A stretch of 40,248 bases of DNA from Basidiobolus meristosporus CBS 931.73 (taxonomy: Eukaryota; Fungi; Basidiobolomycota): assembly GCA_002104905.1 (NCBI GenBank), contig MCFE01000743.1, positions 1 to 40,248 of the forward strand. Reading direction: 5' to 3'. The notes under the pieces were generated by a model. The model was not told the origin of the DNA, ran no database searches, and saw only the letters and a list, made by a program, of their open reading frames with translations. Every line of letters begins with the position of its first letter. Position 1 is the first letter of the stretch. Made by a program: the position numbers and the translations under genes. Below, piece after piece: positions 31,658-40,248 of this stretch.

Positions 31658-32288
31658 TCGCGCTCGACTCGCATAATGGTATCTTGGCATGCTGGTCATG
31701 CTACACTATTATTAATATCACCAGTATATATATTCACCACACCGATTTTGAACATATAAGACCTCTACACAGATATTGCTCTATAGATATCCACAGCTAT
31801 CTTTACCCTTACAGCATCACTATTATCCCTATACTAAACAACAAAAAAAGCACTTAAACTGATGAAATAGCCATAGAAAACACCTATCTATTAGTTCCAC
31901 TATTGATATCATCCACCCTAAATTTATAAACAATGCCGACTCCATACCATTTTCCTATACCAATATATAATTGCGCAACTAAATATGCTTATCAGGAAAA
32001 GAATTACTGGGTAATTTGCATAAAAGCATTCTACTCAAATGCTTGGTTGGGCCAAAGCTCTTGCTATCACCGCATTGAATTAGAATCATCTCGGGTTAGG
32101 GGAAATGCAGGAAAGTAAGAGATCGTAAGTATTGTCGTGACAAAGGATTTGATAAAAAGATATATCAATACCGATCAATAGACTTGATCACCAGATGAAG
32201 TATGCTCAAAGCAATTGGTATATAACAATGGCATGATTATCTGGCAAAGATCACTCTATATACCAAAATGTAAGCTGTACAAAAGGTA

Positions 32289-32325
32289 GGGCTCCGGGGG
32301 GAATTGAACCCGCGACCTCTCGCAC
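32289..32325 (-). tRNA. 3' half of a tRNA-Pro-like gene (5' half missing or decayed; probable pseudogene)
   Basis: Minus strand GT-GCGAG-AGGTC-GCGGG-TTCAATT-CCCCC-CGGAGCC-C, then TTTT (32281-32284). Matches eukaryotic tRNA-Pro from position 37 onward, with an intact B box and discriminator C. No D-arm or 5' acceptor strand found nearby. Confidence 0.7.
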
Positions 32326-32524
32326 AAAAGGGAGTGAATGTGTCCACATTTGTGAAATTTGTATTTTTAAGCAATACTCAAAAAATTATTCCAAAAATAA
32401 GAAGCTAGCTAAGATACTAAAAATCTCTTCAGTAAATAATTTCACTTGCGCTTGACTTGCAATCTAATATTGGAGTGGAAAAATACAGTTCTTTTAGTGG
32501 AAACAGAAAGTTGGGTGACTTGGA

Positions 32525-33234
32525 GTCAGGGGGGGGGGTGATAATCATCAACTGTTGAAATCATTTTTTCAACAACCCAAAATATAGAAGCCAAGTGCTA
32601 CTTGGGTAGCTTTTTAACAAGTGAATAAAGGGAAGGGTCATTTTGTGAAAGCTTATCACAGAGGTAATGAGGTTCAGGAGGAGTCAAAGTAGAGCTAAGC
32701 AGCATTGGAGGGATAACTCAATGAAGTAATTGTTATAAAAAATCTGTAATTGCACCTGAATATTCACCTAACTTAGTCACTCAGATCATAGAGTTAGGGT
32801 AGGGTAGTCAAAGTTGCTAAGATAGGTGAAATTTATATTTGAATTCAGATAAGCCTAATTACAAATTGGTCAGAGACATTTTGAGAGAATTGTTTAGCAA
32901 TACTTTTGTCAAGTACTACCTCTAGAGTGTGATGGTTGATAAATCTCATGTTAACAATCTTGGATAAATTGTAATCTTGTTGCTTGAGATACATCCTATG
33001 CTCAGATATTGGAATAAACTCCACATTGGCAAAGTAGCAGACAGCCCAGTCTGTAGCAGGAGGTGAAACAGAAGTGGCAGGAAACTTTCTTTTAGTCTTG
33101 GGAGGAGCAGCCAGATATCTTGAGGAAGCAGGAACAGGCTTTTTGACAGCTTCAGAGTAGGAAGCGTGAGTAGGAGCAGATGATTCTTGGGGAGTCTTGT
33201 TGACAGGAAGAGTTGGCACAGGGACAATAGATTC
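32525..33234 (-). mobile_element. Old non-LTR derivative D: ORF1/gag-like fragment fused to an RT C-terminal remnant and a diverged shared 3' tail
   Basis: ORF1-like THASYSEAVKKP...YLKQQDYNLSKIVNMRFINHHTLEVVLDK. Terminal peptide LSSTLTPPEPHYLCDKLSQNDPSLYSLVKKLPK* aligns ungapped (13/33 identical, same stop position) with the end of the RT ORF; diverged tail at 32525-32600. Confidence 0.7.
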
Positions 33235-33975
33235 TTAGGGTTAGGGGGGGGGAGACAGTCACCAACAGGTGAAATCTTTATTTCAGTTGAAACCAAGAAG
33301 CCAGCACTACTGTTGTAGCTTTGATACAAGAGTGTGTAGCTGAGGGGAATTTGCTGGTAGGTTAACAAGAAGTGATGATATTTCTTCAGTGCTCAAGACA
33401 CTATTCAGTGGGAAGGGGGGTAGCAAGAGGGGCAAGAATGATTTGTGAGCAACATTAATGAGGGGAATATGATAAGGATTGATATTCATCATAAAGGGAG
33501 TGTGCTGCTTCAGATATTGCTGCCAAAGGTTTGTCAAGTACCTCAGGTAGGCCAGCTTGGGTTTTTCTAACTGCAGAATATATTGAGCAAACTTCTTGAC
33601 TTAAGGATCTCCAAGTATATTTCTCCAGCAGGAGCCAGGTGTAGTGTGGTGTGTTCTCTTCCATGCCCTAATCAGTGGGTTGTTGCAGTGGTGAAGTCTG
33701 AGATATAATCTGGTTCTAAGGTAGAGTAGTCTGGTCTTATAGGGCATAAACCCAAAAGCACCAAGATTAGCATGTCTATAGGGTCATTCAGGCAGATGAG
33801 GCACCAGGGATTTAATGCACCAGACTGCAAACTTGTCAAGCTTAGTGCAGTCTCTAGAAGTAAGAGAGAGAAGTGGTAAGCCAAATTCCAGGACAGGGAA
33901 GACAAATTGCTAGAGTAGAAGGAGGCAGCTGGGAGCTGAAGTTGTAGGAGGAGTAACAATCAGTAGCTTGTGGAT
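33235..33975 (-). mobile_element. Non-LTR retrotransposon copy C: 3' fragment, diverged, internal stop
   Basis: Aligns with the 3' ~730 nt of copy A; in-frame TAA near 33600; tail begins TTAGGGTTAGGG on the plus strand. Confidence 0.9.
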
Positions 33976-34068
33976 GTTGTAAAAATTTGTAATTCCAACT
34001 AAATATTCACCTAGCTTAGTCATTTAAATCATTACCCTCAAATTCTAGAGAATACTGACCAAATTCCT

Positions 34069-34323
34069 TGTTGGGATTTACTTGGAATATTTTCACCAAA
34101 ATACCAGGTACCCAGAACATGAAAATTCTCAAAGTTGTCCAAACAGCCCCAAACTTTGCACACATACTCTAGGGACCTTCCTTAACCTATTCTACGTGTT
34201 TGTTATGCCAAGACCAGGTAAAAGTATAATTACTACTTTTACCTTCAATAAATCATTAAGTGAAAACCACATAATCTACTTGTCCTCCCAATCACTTCCA
34301 ATATCTCCAAGACTCTTACAACA
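34069..34323 (+). mobile_element. Ty1/copia 5' LTR (255 bp)
   Basis: TGTTG...CAACA terminal inverted repeat, directly followed by a copia-type PBS and gag. Confidence 0.88.
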
Positions 34324-34335
34324 GGTTATGAGCCC
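34324..34335 (+). promoter_or_regulatory. Primer-binding site GGTTATGAGCCC (copia-type, initiator-tRNA-Met half-molecule priming)
   Basis: Immediately follows the LTR CA; one mismatch to the Drosophila copia PBS GGTTATGGGCCC as I recall it. Confidence 0.75.
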
Positions 34336-34354
34336 CAAACTGTCACTCTCTGCA

Positions 34355-35042
34355 ATGTCCACTACTGCTATTACTGGAATTTTTCCCTCTGCTGAAAAGT
34401 TGAATGGATCTAACTACCAAGTGTGAAAGGTGATAATGAAGATGCTGCTACAACAAAGAGGCCTTTAAGATATTGTCATGGGAGAAGAATGCCCTCCTAA
34501 AAACGTGGGAGAGGAAGCCTTGAAGTACCAGAAGAAAGAACAAAGTGCCTTTAACTGCATTTGCCTTAATGTCAAGGACAAATTGCTAATTCAATGCTCA
34601 AGAGTAAAAACGGCAAAGAATGCCTGGAAGGCATTAGAAGACACCTACCAGTCATGTTCAGCTGCCAAGAAAATGTATCTGAGAAGAAAATTCTTTACTA
34701 CAAAGATGCTGCCAGGAGAAGAAATGAAAAATCTAATTAACAGAATTACCCTGTTGGTAGATGAGATGGAATCTGTGGGCGTACCAACTACTGATGAGGA
34801 TGTGATAGTTACCATCCTGAATAGCCTGACAAACGAGTTTCAGGGCCTTGTATCAGCCCTAGAGTCCAGAACTGAAGATTTGACCTTAAATTACGTATAT
34901 GGAAGGCTCCTGGATGAAGAATTAAGAAAATCAAGCGCCAATAAGAAGGAAGAAGAAAATGCTTTAATAAGCAATGATAACCAACAAAGGAGGTACCCAA
35001 GACCCTACAGTGGCAACAGCAACCTGTTTTGCAACTACTGCG
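34355..35042 (+). pseudogene. Ty1/copia gag (UBN2-type), two premature stops, truncated within the zinc knuckle
   Basis: KLNGSNYQV*KVIMKMLLQQRGL*DIVMGEE...AKNAWKALEDTY...MYLRRKFFTTKM...DEDVIVTILNSLTNEF...LLDEE...LFCNYC, then an abrupt switch to TTAGGG plus element tail. Confidence 0.92.
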
Positions 35043-35567
35043 TTAGGGGGAGGAAAGTCACCAAGTGGTGAAATCTTTATTTACTTATGACAAGTATCTA
35101 AAGAAGCCAAGTTAATCTGAAGTAATTCCTAGAAAGCTAGGTCTGAGAGATATCATCCTGGTAAGCCAGGTCTGAGAGTTGAGAAGCTGAGTGGTACTAT
35201 ATTTCCTAGTTAGCTAGGTCTGAGAGAGGTTTCCTGGAAAGCCAGGCCTGAGAAGTGAGAATCTGAATATATCTGAGCTGAGTTATACTGGTTTGCGGTA
35301 GCTGAATTGTGGCCGGAATGGCCAGTAGACTGGGGGAACTGAGATGAAATTCTGGGCAATCACTGGCCATATTTACTAGGCAAATCTGGCCAATTAGCAT
35401 TTCAAGGATTTCAGCCAATCAGAGCCTTTACTTTGCCCGATGGTTGATCAAGCCATCTCCCAATGAGCACACATCAATTTATTAATCAAATTTTGTTGGA
35501 TCCAGGATTTGAACCCACAACCATGGGTATGGAAGGGTTAGGGATAACCACAAGGCTAAGTGTTCTT
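35043..35567 (-). mobile_element. tRNA-headed SINE-like element, copy 1
   Basis: A-box-like TAGCCTTGTGG (35548-35558) and exact B box GGTTCAAATCC (35505-35515) at tRNA spacing; non-coding body; 3' tail shared with the LINE; near-identical second copy at 37778-38299. Confidence 0.78.
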
Positions 35568-35569
35568 GG

Positions 35570-37770
35570 TTAGGGGGGGAGACAGTCACCAACAGGTGAA
35601 ATCTTTATTTCAGTTGAAACAAAGAAGCCAGCGCTACTGTTGTAGCTTTGATACAAGAGTGTGTAGCTGAGGGGAATTTGTAGGTAAGTTAATAAGAAGT
35701 GATGATAGTTCTTCAGTGCTCAAGACACTGTTCAGTGGGAAGGGGGGTAGCAAGAGAGGTAAGAATGACTTGTGAACAACATTAATGAGGGGAATGTGAC
35801 AAGGATTGATATTCATCATAAAGGGAGTGTGCTGCTGCAGATATTGCTGCCAAAGGTCTGTCAAGTACTTCAGGTAGGCCAGCTTGGGTTTTTCTGACTG
35901 CAGAATATAGTGAGCAAACTTCTTGACTTCAGCATCTCCAAGTATAGTTCTCCAGCAGGAGCCAGGTGTTGTGTGGTGTGTTCTCTTCCAGGCCTTAATC
36001 AGTGGGTTGTTGCAGTTGTGAAGTCTGAGGTATAATCTGGTTCTAAGGTAGAGAAGTCTGATCTTATAGGGCATAAACCCAAAAGCACCAAGAATAGCAT
36101 GTCTGTAGGGGCATTCAGGCAAATGAGGCACCAAGGAGGTAATGCACCATACTGCAAACTTGTCAAGCTTAGTGCAGTCTCTAGAAGTAAGAGAGAGAAG
36201 TGGTAAGCCAAATTCCAGGACAGGGAAGACAAACTGCTTGAGTAGAAGGAGGCAGCTGGGAGCTGAAGTTGTAGGAGGAGTAACAGCCAACAGCTTGTGG
36301 AGTGCCTGTCTTGCAAGGATAATTCTCTTCTTCAGGTGTGATCCAGAGTCTAGTCCAGTAGGAAGGAAAGGAAAGCCAAGATATGTAGCAGAAACCTGAG
36401 CAGGTAGAGTGGAGTTCTCCAAGTTGATGGGAGAGCCCAAAGGTACTGTCTTTGCAATGGAAAGCTGGAGATTATTCTTCTGCAGATACTGGTGGATGGT
36501 CTGGGAGTCTTGTTGCACATTGGAGGAGGATATTCTGATGTCATCAGCAAAGAGAGTAACCAGGCAGTCAGCTGAGAGTCTTGGGAAATCATTCAGGAAG
36601 ATGGCAAGCAGTATAGGACCAAGCACAGAGCCTTGAACCACTCCATTAGGAACTGAGAACACAGCTGATTGCTCACTTGGGTGCAGAATTCTTGCTTGTG
36701 GATCCAGAAACAGAGACCTGACAAGGAGGGTGAGAGAGGTACTGGAGAAGCATTGCAACTTGGACCAAAGCAGATTTCTGTCAACTGAATCAAAGGCCTT
36801 GGTAATATCAAACAGAACAGAGGGATACTTGCACTGGAGAGAGTGATCTTCGCTAAGTATGACTGCATATTCCAAGGAGAGGCCAGGAACAAAGCCAAAC
36901 TGTGCAGGATGAAACTTGAGAGAGTCAGAGTAGAGCTCCTGAGCAAGCAGAAGCTCAAACACCTTTCTGCAGGTGGGCAGCAGAGATATTGGCCTGTAGG
37001 AGCTAGGATCCAGGTGCTTTCCTTTACCCTTGTACAGTGGCAGAACATTTGCAAAGGACCATTCCTCAGGAGTAGAAAGCTGGGCTGAGCATTGCTGAAA
37101 CAGTGGAAGCAGAAGTGCAGACATGGCCTTGGTACTAGTCTTCAGAAGCTCATAAGAGATTGTGTCCACACCTGGAGCAGTAGAGTTGGGAAGCCTCTTG
37201 AGCACATTATGGATTCTCCTTTGATCAAGTGCAAGTGGGATGGGCAGAGTCTTGAAGTCAGGATGAAAGCCAGGAGTTGAGTACTGCTTTGTAGAGAAGA
37301 AGATGTTAGCCAGCTGTTCTGTTGAAGGTAACTTCCTGGAAGAGGGCCTCATTGCCCTGTAGAGTCTTGATACTGTTCTTGTTATAGAGTTGGAAGATTG
37401 CAGAGGCAAGGAACTCATAATATGATCCCAGAGCTGAGTATGCAGAGTGTGGTGAATTGCCTTGGAGTGGTGTATTGCTGTCAGGAGGAGTTTCTCTGTT
37501 TTTGGGTTAGGGAAGCTCAGGTAGCTTTGTTGAAGGGCTGAAACAATGGATTCCCATTTTCTTGAGGTAACAGCAGTAGTCTTGCATGGCAGTGAGAGGG
37601 AGGCAGACACCAGAATCAGATGCTTCACAAAGAGCCAGGCAAAGTTGAGATCATCTGGCAGAGAAAGTAGCAAACTGGCAAGCTTCAAGTAGTTCCCAAA
37701 GTCTTTCTTCTGATTCTTGGTAGCTTTGTGGGTGAGCACAGTAAGTTTTGGCAGCTTCTTCTTCACAACT
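35570..37770 (-). mobile_element. Non-LTR (LINE-type) retrotransposon copy A, 5'-truncated, open 710-codon RT ORF (35634-37766)
   Basis: APGVDTISYELLK, EWSFANVLPLYKGKG, SYRPISLLPTCRKVFE, QFGF, FDITKAFDSV, GVVQGSVLGP, FADD, YLG. No endonuclease, RNase H or CCHC knuckle in the retained part. Confidence 0.96.
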
Positions 37771-37777
37771 GGTTGGG

Positions 37778-38299
37778 TTAGGGGAGGACAGTCACCAAGT
37801 GGTGAAATCTTTATTTACTTATGACAAGTATCTAAAGAAGCCAAGTTATTCTGAAGTAATTCCTAGAAAGCTAGGTCTGAGAGATATCATCCTGGTAAGC
37901 CAGGTCTGAGAGTTGAGAAGCTGAGTGGTACTGTATTTCCTAGTTAGCTAGGTCTTAGAGAGGTTTCCTGGAAAGCCAGGCCTGAGAAGTGAGAATCTGA
38001 ATATATCTGAGCTAAGTTATACTGGTTTGCGGTAGCTGAATTGTGGCCGGAATGGCCAGTAGACTGGGGGAACTGAGATGAATTTCTGGGCGATCACTGG
38101 CCAAATTTACTAGGCAAATCTGGCCAATTAGCATTTCAAGGATTTCAGCCAATCAGAGCCTTTACTTTGCCCAATGGTTGATCAAGCCATCTCCCAATGA
38201 GCACACATCAATTTATTAATCAAATTTTGCTGGATCCAGGATTTGAACCCACAACCATGGGTATGGAAGGGTTAGGGATAACCACAAGGCTAAGTGTTC
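37778..38299 (-). mobile_element. tRNA-headed SINE-like element, copy 2
   Basis: Near-identical to 35043-35567; B box 38239-38249, A-box-like 38282-38292. Confidence 0.78.
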
Positions 38300-38303
38300 T
38301 TGG

Positions 38304-38350
38304 TTAGGGGGGAGACAGTCACCAACAGGTGAAATCTTTATTTCAGTTGA
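38304..38350 (-). mobile_element. 47-bp isolated 3' tail of the LINE
   Basis: ttaggggggagacagtcaccaacaggtgaaatctttatttcagttga, matching the copy A/B tail apart from G-run length. Confidence 0.88.
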
Positions 38351-38354
38351 AGGG

Positions 38355-38560
38355 TTAGGGTTAGGGGGGGGGAGGGAAAGTCACCAAGTTGGTGAAATCT
38401 TTATTTGGGTTAAGAACTAATCTAAGTACAAATAAAGAAGCCAATTAAGAGGTCTAGAACCTCTCTAATAAGTAATCTAATTTATGTTTTGTTTCATCTC
38501 TAATGTTTGTTTCAATAAAGTAAAGCTCATCAGGGGTAAATATAAAATTCAGGGGTTTTG
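38355..38560 (-). mobile_element. Third short family (~200 bp, AT-rich body) carrying the same 3' tail
   Basis: TTAGGGTTAGGG-Gn-AGGGAAAGTCACCAAGTTGGTGAAATCTTTATTT...AAAGAAGCCA, then a body unlike the LINE or SINE. Confidence 0.65.
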
Positions 38561-38563
38561 GGG

Positions 38564-40248
38564 TTAGGGGGGAGACAGTCACCAACAGGTGAAATCTTTA
38601 TTTCAGTTGAAACAAAGAAGCCAGCGCTACTGTTGTAGCTTTGATACAAGAGTGTGTAGCTGAGGGGAATTTGTAGGTAAGTTAATAAGAAGTGATGATA
38701 GTTCTTCAGTGCTCAAGACACTGTTCAGTGGGAAGGGGGGTAGCAAGAGAGGTAAGAATGACTTGTGAACAACATTAATGAGGGGAATGTGATAAGGATT
38801 GATATTCATCATAAAGGGAGTGTGCTGCTGCAGATATTGCTGCCAAAGGTCTGTCAAGTACTTCAGGTAGGCCAGCTTGGGTTTTTCTGACTGCAGAATA
38901 TAGTGAGCAAACTTCTTGACTTCAGCATCTCCAAGTATAGTTCTCCAGCAGGAGCCAGGTGTTGTGTGGTGTGTTCTCTTCCAGGCCTTAATCAGTGGGT
39001 TGTTGCAGTTGTGAAGTCTGAGGTATAATCTGGTTCTAAGGTAGAGAAGTCTGATCTTATAGGGCATAAACCCAAAAGCACCAAGAATAGCATGTCTGTA
39101 GGGGCATTCAGGCAAATGAGGCACCAAGGAGGTAATGCACCATACTGCAAACTTGTCAAGCTTAGTGCAGTCTCTAGAAGTAAGAGAGAGAAGTGGTAAG
39201 CCAAATTCCAGGACAGGGAAGACAAACTGCTTGAGTAGAAGGAGGCAGCTGGGAGCTGAAGTTGTAGGAGGAGTAACAGCCAGTAGCTTGTGGAGTGCCT
39301 GTCTTGCCAGGATAATTCTCTTCTTCAGGTGTGCTCCAGAGTCTAGTCCAGTAGGAAGGAAAGGAAAGCCAAGATATGTAGCAGAAACCTGAGCAGGTAG
39401 AGTGGAGTTCTCCAAGTTGATGGGAGAGCCCAAAGGTACTGTCTTTGCAATGGAAAGCTGGAGATTATTCTTCTGCAGATACTGGTGGATGGTCTGGGAG
39501 TCTTGTTGCACATTGGAGGAGGATATTCTGATGTCATCAGCAAAGAGAGTAACCAGGCAGTCAGCTGAGAGTCTTGGGAAATCATTCAGGAAGATGGCAA
39601 GCAGTATAGGACCAAGCACAGAGCCTTGAACCACTCCATTAGGAACTGAGAACACAGCTGATTGCTCACTTGGGTGCAGAATTCTTGCTTGTGGATCCAG
39701 AAACAGAGACCTGACAAGGAGGGTGAGAGAGGTACTGGAGAAGCATTGCAACTTGGACCAAAGCAGATTTCTGTCAACTGAATCAAAGGCCTTAGTTATA
39801 TCAAACAGAACAGAGGGATACTTGCACTGGAGAGAGTGATCTTGGCTAAGTATGACTGCATATTCCAAGGAGAGGCCAGGAACAAAGCCAAACTGTGCAG
39901 GATGAAACTTGAGGGAGTCAGAGTAGAGCTCCTGAGCAAGCAGAAGCTCAAACACCTTTCTGCAGGTGGGCAGTAGAGATATTGGCCTGTAGGAGCTAGG
40001 ATCCAGGTGCTTTCCTTTACCCTTGTACAGTGGCAGAACATTTGCAAAGGACCATTCCTCAGGAGTAGAAGCTGGCTGAGCATTGCTGAAACAGTGGAAG
40101 CAGAGTGCAGACATGGCCTTGGTACTAGTCTTCAGAAGCTCATAGGAGATTGTGTCCACACCTGGAGCAGTAGAGTTGGGAAGCCTCTTGAGCACATTAT
40201 GGATTCTCCTTTGATCAAGTGCAAGTGGGATGGGCAGAGTCTTGAAGT
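38564..40248 (-). mobile_element. Non-LTR retrotransposon copy B (runs off the window), near-identical to copy A
   Basis: ORF 38627-40195 has the same RT motifs; only scattered substitutions and three 1-nt deletions relative to copy A. Confidence 0.96.

Follow-up and report, generated by a model that had tools for sequence, protein, structure and literature searches.

A telomere-associated, head-to-tail array of LINE and SINE-like retroelements at a contig end of the fungus Basidiobolus meristosporus

Cases in which chromosome ends are served or exploited by retroelements have been described in flies, silkworm, rotifers, Giardia, Chlorella and a small number of fungi (ascomycetes and basidiomycetes), and each informs the relation between telomerase and retrotransposons. 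Among the telomere-associated retroelements compiled in the literature (PMC10088271), the fungal ones all belong to the CRE clade and carry a restriction-enzyme-like endonuclease (PMC12857005). The current study concerns a stretch of 40,248 bases from Basidiobolus meristosporus CBS 931.73 (contig MCFE01000743.1, C1083; "the window" denotes this entire contig, from an assembly of 89.5 Mb in 1,366 contigs). The last 7.7 kb of the window, from 32,525 to the contig end, hold a stack of retroelement copies joined through telomere-like sequence, with the minus strand as the sense strand of all elements. The anatomy of this array is that of a telomere-specialised retroelement consortium, made up of retrotransposons lacking long terminal repeats (non-LTR), of the long interspersed nuclear element (LINE) type, an element resembling short interspersed nuclear elements (SINEs), and a partner that encodes only the first open reading frame (ORF1).

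The array resembles HeT-A, TART and TAHRE of Drosophila (Jockey clade) in its head-to-tail arrangement at ends with 3' ends facing the centromere, in variable 5' truncation without target-site duplication, and in the association of autonomous elements having an apurinic endonuclease (APE) and a reverse transcriptase (RT) with an ORF1-only partner (PMC5537684, PMC6581046); arrays that include such an ORF1-only helper are a hallmark of Drosophila (PMC5537684). It differs from the Drosophila system in that telomerase and long TTAGGG caps coexist with the elements, the tail is a C-run with CCCTAA rather than oligo(A), a SINE-like member takes part and the host is a fungus. The idea of a telomere-complementary 3' end is already known from Athena and Coprina, end-restricted, endonuclease-deficient Penelope-like elements with 3' reverse-complement telomeric repeats that are thought to pair with the G-rich overhang, and Coprina is found also in fungi (PMC8557442). 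The 3' telomeric repeats held in common are a functional likeness, not membership. Athena and Coprina have a Penelope-type RT, no endonuclease and hammerhead motifs (PMC8557442), whereas the present elements have a LINE-type RT, an APE endonuclease and a separate ORF1. TRAS and SART of Bombyx and Tribolium (R1 clade) are telomeric-repeat-specific APE-type LINEs of fixed orientation that coexist with telomerase, but they carry poly(A) and are inserted inside repeat tracts (PMC7265360, PMC2868851); here there is no poly(A) and 0-4 units lie between elements. MoTeR, FoTeR and Cnl1 (CRE/SLACS clade; PMC12857005, PMC7367193) are, like the present elements, fungal non-LTR elements at chromosome ends, with telomere repeats at junctions and non-autonomous derivatives. 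Their endonuclease is restriction-enzyme-like and lies C-terminal to the RT, and they encode only one type of ORF (PMC12857005), in contrast to the N-terminal APE-type endonuclease, the coiled-coil ORF1 and the shared hairpin/C-run tail found here. Zepp of Chlorella (L1-like) is likewise an APE-lineage LINE, nested and 5'-truncated at telomeric regions of a microbe with telomerase-type repeats (PMC10088271); no shared-tail SINE or ORF1-only partner is known to have been described for it. A literature search on Basidiobolus telomere retrotransposons gave nothing relevant, and the belief voiced in the original prediction (an earlier reading of this DNA from its letters alone), that no such fungal LINE/SINE array with TTAGGG had been described, agrees with the literature searched, where no earlier description was found. 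Mechanistically, Morrish et al. reportedly observed endonuclease-independent L1 insertion at dysfunctional telomeres and breaks, with a free 3' end as primer, short microhomology and no target-site duplication. In mammals this is said to be a rare side reaction of a dispersed element, whereas here it would be the main, sequence-assisted mode.

The array is recognized by a 3' tail of ~60 nt, with two hairpins, a C-run and CCCTAA, that is common to all shared-tail families. In the RNA sense, as predicted from the DNA, the tail would comprise a conserved GGCUUCUUUAUUU...AAAUAAAG hairpin that holds AAUAAA, a UCACC-loop-GGUGA hairpin, a short spacer and 3-10 C, followed by CCCUAA once or twice. Both hairpins are predicted by RNAalifold, with modest compensatory changes (3/16 pairs). 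Poly(A), such as Zepp carries as its tail, was present at none of 52 tails compared; 41 of these carry 1-4 reverse-complement telomeric units. Rfam revealed no known RNA family in the array and no hammerhead match in 32200-40248 at E up to 1. The eight tails of the original prediction, all on the plus strand, were recovered as eight copies of repeat family D5 (at 32528, 33242, 35041, 35569, 37775, 38302, 38365 and 38562). A degenerate tail pattern matched seven of them, all on the plus strand and with 0.00 expected from 100 shuffles, the eighth having one extra loop base. An nhmmer profile built from the 52 tails retrieved all eight (E 1e-22 to 7e-12), with no match on the minus strand of the window or in its part left of 32522. 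A weak ninth tail at 32797-32856 (nhmmer E 0.056), additional to those predicted, is judged real because the body that follows it (32863-33236) is 93-94% identical to the ORF1-only family in other arrays. Plain TTAGGG is not enriched window-wide (27 against 19.8 expected, a count reached by 7/100 shuffles); the signal is hexamer plus tail together, not TTAGGG alone. Additionally, further array families are joined through TTAGGGTTAGGG and have other tails, without hairpin or C-run (starts TCTAAATTCTTTTATTGAATC... and TTCTAGTGCTTTATTGGG...; sites L005:675, L012:1032 and 1191, L001:7275, L007:3258), and the consortium therefore exceeds the families seen in the window.

Regarding the location of these tails in the genome, the ten best LINE-tail hits elsewhere all lie within 0.8-9.5 kb of a contig end (10/10). 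Four of the contigs (C212, C90, C636 and C1283) terminate in tracts of 22-39 TTAGGG units, which abut the 5' end of the last element; the remaining five in forward orientation, as does the window, break off at the array, four within a LINE copy and one, C1190, within an 86-b tandem repeat. The latter repeat (~86 b; L001:7980-8274) follows the array up to the contig end and contains TTAGGGG and TTAGGG in each unit. Every tail in the nine forward-oriented contigs is oriented as the telomere is, and the sole reverse hit of the ten, on C284, is, as far as the junction itself goes, an ordinary tail junction on the opposite strand. On the two largest contigs listed, the tails are confined to the telomeric side: all 5 listed tails of the 345-kb C1 are at most 22 kb, and all 10 of the 264-kb C2 at most 10 kb, from the telomere tract, with no listed tails in the preceding 250-320 kb. 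Counted across the whole genome, forward matches to the exact tail pattern number 1415 and reverse matches 121, and for (TTAGGG)4 the corresponding counts are 7604 and 81; the latter counts imply ~300 telomere-bearing contig ends. In nearly all contigs with a telomere, it lies at the right end, and contigs starting with CCCTAA are almost absent. Scored hits of a copia-type element, used as control, are divided 21 forward to 19 reverse, and therefore the search itself has no strand preference. Copies at contig ends under (TTAGGG)n caps thus bear out the proposal of a telomere-associated head-to-tail retroelement array of one orientation, with 3' ends toward the chromosome interior. Tails dispersed in chromosome interiors were not seen in the sampled contigs, and in none of the ten other contigs examined does the array give way to unique DNA on its right side. 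A Telomerase_RBD match above cut-off on C935 indicates that telomerase is encoded, and the telomerase reverse transcriptase is hence present in a genome in which four contigs have pure terminal tracts of the above length.

The junctions between elements are short and of uniform grammar. In a set of 52 junctions from ten contigs, the complete TTAGGG units ahead of the G-run number 0 in 11 cases, 1 in 28, 2 in 11, 3 in 1 and 4 in 1; the terminal tracts have at least 22 units compared to this 0-4 (mode 1). The truncated left neighbour usually aligns 1-4 nt into the telomere-like tract, where by chance 0 would be seen in about three quarters of cases. Within the window, the abrupt stops on the left and the absence of target-site duplications described earlier hold. 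As worded in the original prediction, the junctions at 33235 and 38355 (TTAGGGTTAGGG) and the oldest, decayed one are correct, and that at 37771 requires amendment: the 'GGTTGGGTTAGGGG' given there is not wholly telomere-like, its first GGTTG being LINE, because longer copies continue CATAGAAAGG after 37775, which leaves only GGTTAGGGG as the telomere-like part. Brief TTAGGG re-capping between rounds of addition, also part of the original prediction, may not be needed as a step by telomerase, since 0-4 units with microhomology could be templated by the CCCUAA end of the element RNA. Source-sample runs contain, among short Logan unitigs, many alternative joints of a truncated LINE to a tail.

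Two copia-type inserts and the age of the LINE copies place the elements of the window in a temporal order. The copia sequence is collinear with intact copies to 35041; past this cut the intact copies continue AAAAGGAAAGG, and here G+TTAGGGGG and the SINE tail follow without homology to intact copia. The second insert, an LTR scrap that matches at 91.5% over 32731-32789, has likewise lost its distal portion, and TTAGGG comes next. Both inserts miss their distal part and are capped by a tail, as predicted by end erosion or breakage followed by addition, and not by insertion. Median identity of the window's LINE-A copies to other copies is 94.5% at 33235, 99.3% at 35570 and 99.4% at 38564; copies become younger outward, and the same trend is found on C491, C90 and C1034.

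From proximal to distal (Table 1), the stack consists of family H, the copia LTR scrap, type D, LINE-A of 740 b, the copia 5' LTR with gag, element B, LINE-A of 2.2 kb, a second B, a 48-b LINE-A stub, a 195-b LINE-C end, and a LINE-A that leaves the contig. Family H is joined to unique DNA by A+G10 at 32525 and has no match among nine other arrays. The LINE-C fragment is 99.5% identical to a LINE-C copy on C636 that has a 949-aa open frame. In the last LINE-A copy the frame breaks near the right end (40020-40110), where source-run unitigs differ by single-base indels; these breaks may be assembly errors rather than decay.

Table 1. Features of the array in the window, ordered from the chromosome interior toward the contig end
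Feature	Position	Strand	Description and basis
Family H, oldest element, 3' end only	32525..32730	-	Diverged double-hairpin tail (nhmmer E 7e-12)
Copia-type LTR start, scrap of 63 b	32731..32793	+	Repeat family D7, 85% to 33981-34032
Type D, ORF1-only partner, older 5'-truncated copy	32794..33234	-	ORF 32845-33219; decayed tail 32794-32856
LINE-A, old copy, 3' 740 bases	33235..33974	-	Starts TTAGGGTTAGGG+G6; interrupted by copia insertion; collinear up to 33974
Copia-type element, 5' LTR and gag, remainder missing	33975..35041	+	Retrotran_gag_2 E 8e-38; cut within gag zinc knuckle
SINE-like element B, full length, ~527 bases	35042..35569	-	A/B-box-like head at right end, LINE-type tail at left (D4, D5)
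LINE-A, young 5'-truncated copy, 2.2 kb	35570..37775	-	710-aa open ORF2 part with RVT_1, E 3e-24
SINE-like element B, second full-length copy	37776..38303	-	Joined via GGTTAGGGG; D4 96%
LINE-A stub, only first 48 bases of tail	38304..38351	-	nhmmer profile positions 7-63
LINE-C, second autonomous LINE family, 3' fragment	38352..38563	-	Joined via GGGTTAGGGTTAGGG+G6
LINE-A, young copy running off the contig	38564..40248	-	522-aa ORF

Full-length LINE-A, known from copies on other contigs, measures ~4.5 kb. Its ORF1 product of 511-524 aa has a coiled coil and a C-terminal domain common to the ORF1-only partner, and its ORF2 product of 917 aa combines RVT_1 with a divergent N-terminal APE-type endonuclease. 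The RT is of LINE type (RVT_1 at E 3e-24 to 2e-25), and its best solved relative is human L1 ORF2p (E 4e-13). The Exo_endo_phos Pfam match is weak, falling under the cut-off for LINE-A and just over it in the relative P0005. An AF2 model of the endonuclease (pLDDT 71) suggests the fold, with a Foldseek probability of 1.0 to APE1, ExoIII and the endonucleases of L1, R1 and TRAS1. The motifs N, Y-PP, GDxN and SDH are kept in all family members whose aligned piece covers them, and in the four members that span the metal-binding site of motif II, Asp takes the place of Glu. The family endonuclease is short (~200 aa) and has no usual H-GG motif. A Pfam scan detected no restriction-enzyme-like endonuclease domain in ORF2. 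One 3' tail is common to LINE-A copies as different in length as 48 b, 740 b, 2.2 kb and ~4.5 kb, whose 5' truncation varies. Judged from RT, N-terminal endonuclease and 5' truncation, the element is classified as an APE-type non-LTR retrotransposon. Outside a family of five proteins (48-80% identity), the nearest proteins are APE+RT proteins at most 31% identical, and an Atlas search returned generic APE+RT clusters only.

The partner elements are tied to the LINEs by protein or by tail. The type D family has a 196-aa ORF with 44% identity to the C-terminal domain of the LINE ORF1 (E 4e-14). Element B has its 3' tail in common with the partner LINE, and many copies, from five contigs or more, begin with the same constant 5' end (ctaagtgttcttgg). 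By eye, its head contains a B-box-like GGTTCAAATCC and an A-box-like TAGCCTTGTGG, ~40 nt apart; in this head neither ARAGORN, with thresholds lowered to 80%, nor the Rfam model for tRNA found a match. The LINE-shared tail and the constant 5' end agree with the earlier designation as a tRNA-SINE; the head may be tRNA-derived, but ARAGORN and Rfam lend this no support. Short telomere-like seeds occur internally in the elements (window 37504-37512, 35535-35543 and 38269-38277; L003:9699-9710). Within the LINE ORF2, GGGTTAGGG encodes the codons FPNPK, and its nucleotide sequence is kept even in relatives of no more than 48-63% identity. This 9-mer is present in the SINE-like element as well, ~30 nt in from its 5' end, and TTAGGGTTAGGG is found 100-150 nt from the LINE-A 5' end. 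The ORF2 seed is precisely the site of a junction in one relative (L019:5636). Another copy of the window's copia family (L026; C1029, ~33.5 kb) sits in the endonuclease-coding part of a LINE-A, with flank ILLGDLNIPHPEN, and the copia family therefore lands repeatedly in arrays.

The architecture extends beyond this genome. ORF2 relatives of 48-80% identity are encoded in contigs of seven other public data sets (ERR14042375, ERR14042384, ERR14042393, ERR14127404, ERR14127551, ERR14656578 and ERZ27274739), and their 3' ends, wherever present, show AAUAAAG, the same hairpin and the C-run, and then CCCTAA or CCCTAACCCTAA. In two of these contigs the elements are stacked, the tail being joined without a gap to the 5' end of another element or to a truncated copy. 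Conserved tail and stacking in the relatives indicate that the architecture predates the families of this genome. Two metagenome scans for the tail gave 0 matches to the strict pattern and at least 121 to a loose one; among those listed, 107 were one unrelated identical string, and none continued into a C-run and TAA.

Based on this collective evidence, we lean slightly toward an origin of the subtelomeric stack in successive end additions of telomere-specialised non-LTR elements, with complementary DNA (cDNA) primed on the G-strand 3' end. The primer, the endonuclease role and a benefit to the host are what we infer from the observed anatomy. In this reaction, a chromosome end that is short or uncapped would offer its G-strand 3' end, with which the C-run and CCCUAA of the RNA end would pair through a few bases, and ORF2p would extend the chromosome 3' end as cDNA. 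Early stop of copying would result in 5' truncation, and the telomerase encoded in the genome would then cap the new end. The passengers, that is, the SINE-like RNA, the ORF1-only element and older families, would borrow the 3' end of the two autonomous LINE families. Several points weigh against end addition. The contig stops at 40248 inside its last LINE-A copy, so that its own cap is out of view; Logan contigs and unitigs neither confirmed the specific junctions of this contig nor extended its end. The microhomology at junctions fits telomerase-made and RNA-templated repeats alike, and the RNA 3' end is predicted from DNA sequence. The endonuclease appears to be intact, and the domain would be unneeded for pure end-priming. 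Enrichment at ends was gauged on samples from the ~1,500 tails in total and on strand counts across the genome. Lastly, contig orientation in the assembly is clearly non-random, because random orientation cannot give 7604:81; the bias may come from the assembler or a processing step.

The apparently intact endonuclease leads directly to the alternative of a TRAS/SART-type reaction, in which the APE endonuclease nicks the G strand of duplex TTAGGG and elements are inserted within the tract instead of being added to the end. We regard this as rather unlikely. Endonuclease fold and catalytic motifs are kept across members only 40-54% identical in the domain, the TRAS1 endonuclease is among the matches suggested by the structural model, and the same orientation and telomeric junctions would be expected; for SART1Bm, three repeats suffice (PMC7265360). 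Against these stand the junctions, none of which (0/52) exceeds 4 units though terminal tracts have at least 22. Eleven junctions are without a complete unit and the copia junction is without any telomeric target. There is no poly(A) tail, and insertion leaves the distal loss of both copia inserts unexplained. Nicking at random sites of a long tract is disfavoured because telomere repeats are nearly absent between units. End addition, to return to the favoured origin, competes secondly with template switching, whereby the RT jumps to the C-run/CCCUAA end of another RNA and several units are laid down in one event. Very short stubs, such as the 48 bases of 38304-38351 that are followed at once by another tail (similar on C1089), are well suited to this explanation, as are junction microhomologies of 0-4 nt, some without a telomere unit, and neighbouring young copies that are all 99.3-99.4% identical. 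The age gradient (94.5% versus 99.3%) and the two copia insertions between units, however, need events separated in time. Template switching may explain some of the joints, especially the 48-b stubs, but not the array, for which we consider it improbable.

An ordinary dispersed LINE/SINE pair with a chance TTAGGG-like 3' microsatellite, piled up by nested insertion into a repeat graveyard, is very improbable. Many LINEs have short 3' repeats, and 8% of the tails are reverse-oriented, but the tails lie at contig ends with locked orientation while copia is without strand bias, target-site duplications are not seen, the window is free of tails over its first 32.5 kb, and the reverse case on C284 is an ordinary tail junction on the other strand. 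An assembly artefact of collapsed or chimerically joined repeats at contig ends, which the breaks of contigs inside array repeats, the unexplained orientation bias and the indels in the last LINE copy could suggest, is hardly credible given that the same junction grammar, with many different breakpoints, occurs in ten contigs and also in source-run unitigs and in independent read sets of related organisms.

Proximal to the array, the window carries ordinary genes (e.g., SH3 domain, alpha/beta hydrolase) at a G+C of ~0.5 from position 1 to ~24 kb, and G+C is ~0.41 at 24-32.5 kb. The segment 31,000-32,530, immediately adjacent to the array, had no match in any other array in the comparison. A tRNA-like T-arm and acceptor fragment (GGGTTCAATTCCC...) is located just left of the array at 32285-32335 on the minus strand; ARAGORN called no gene in it, and the Rfam match covers 13 nt only (E 0.54).

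Lastly, our study has a bearing on how telomerase and retrotransposons share the chromosome end. Within the literature searched, the system would be the first of its kind found in an early-diverging fungus, and also the first in fungi whose basis is an APE-type LINE accompanied by a SINE-like passenger. Features that have until now been met apart from one another would come together in it, namely arrays and an ORF1-only helper as in flies, a telomere-complementary 3' end as in rotifers, and coexistence with telomerase as in the silkworm. It looks recently active, because ~1,500 young tails are present at several hundred contig ends and copies are 99% alike, and the host organism is culturable, which makes the system open to study. 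Going further, it is conceivable, though we hold it to be doubtful, that chromosome ends, apparently several hundred of them, are routinely rebuilt by the retroelement consortium alongside telomerase. A convergent, Athena-like telomere-complementary end of a LINE RNA would then heal short or broken ends, carrying SINE-like and ORF1-only partners with it, and the CCCTAACCC seeds in the SINE head, the LINE-A 5' untranslated region and ORF2 would aid telomerase or the restart of a next element. If true, this would amount to a Drosophila-style end-maintenance partnership in a telomerase-positive fungus.

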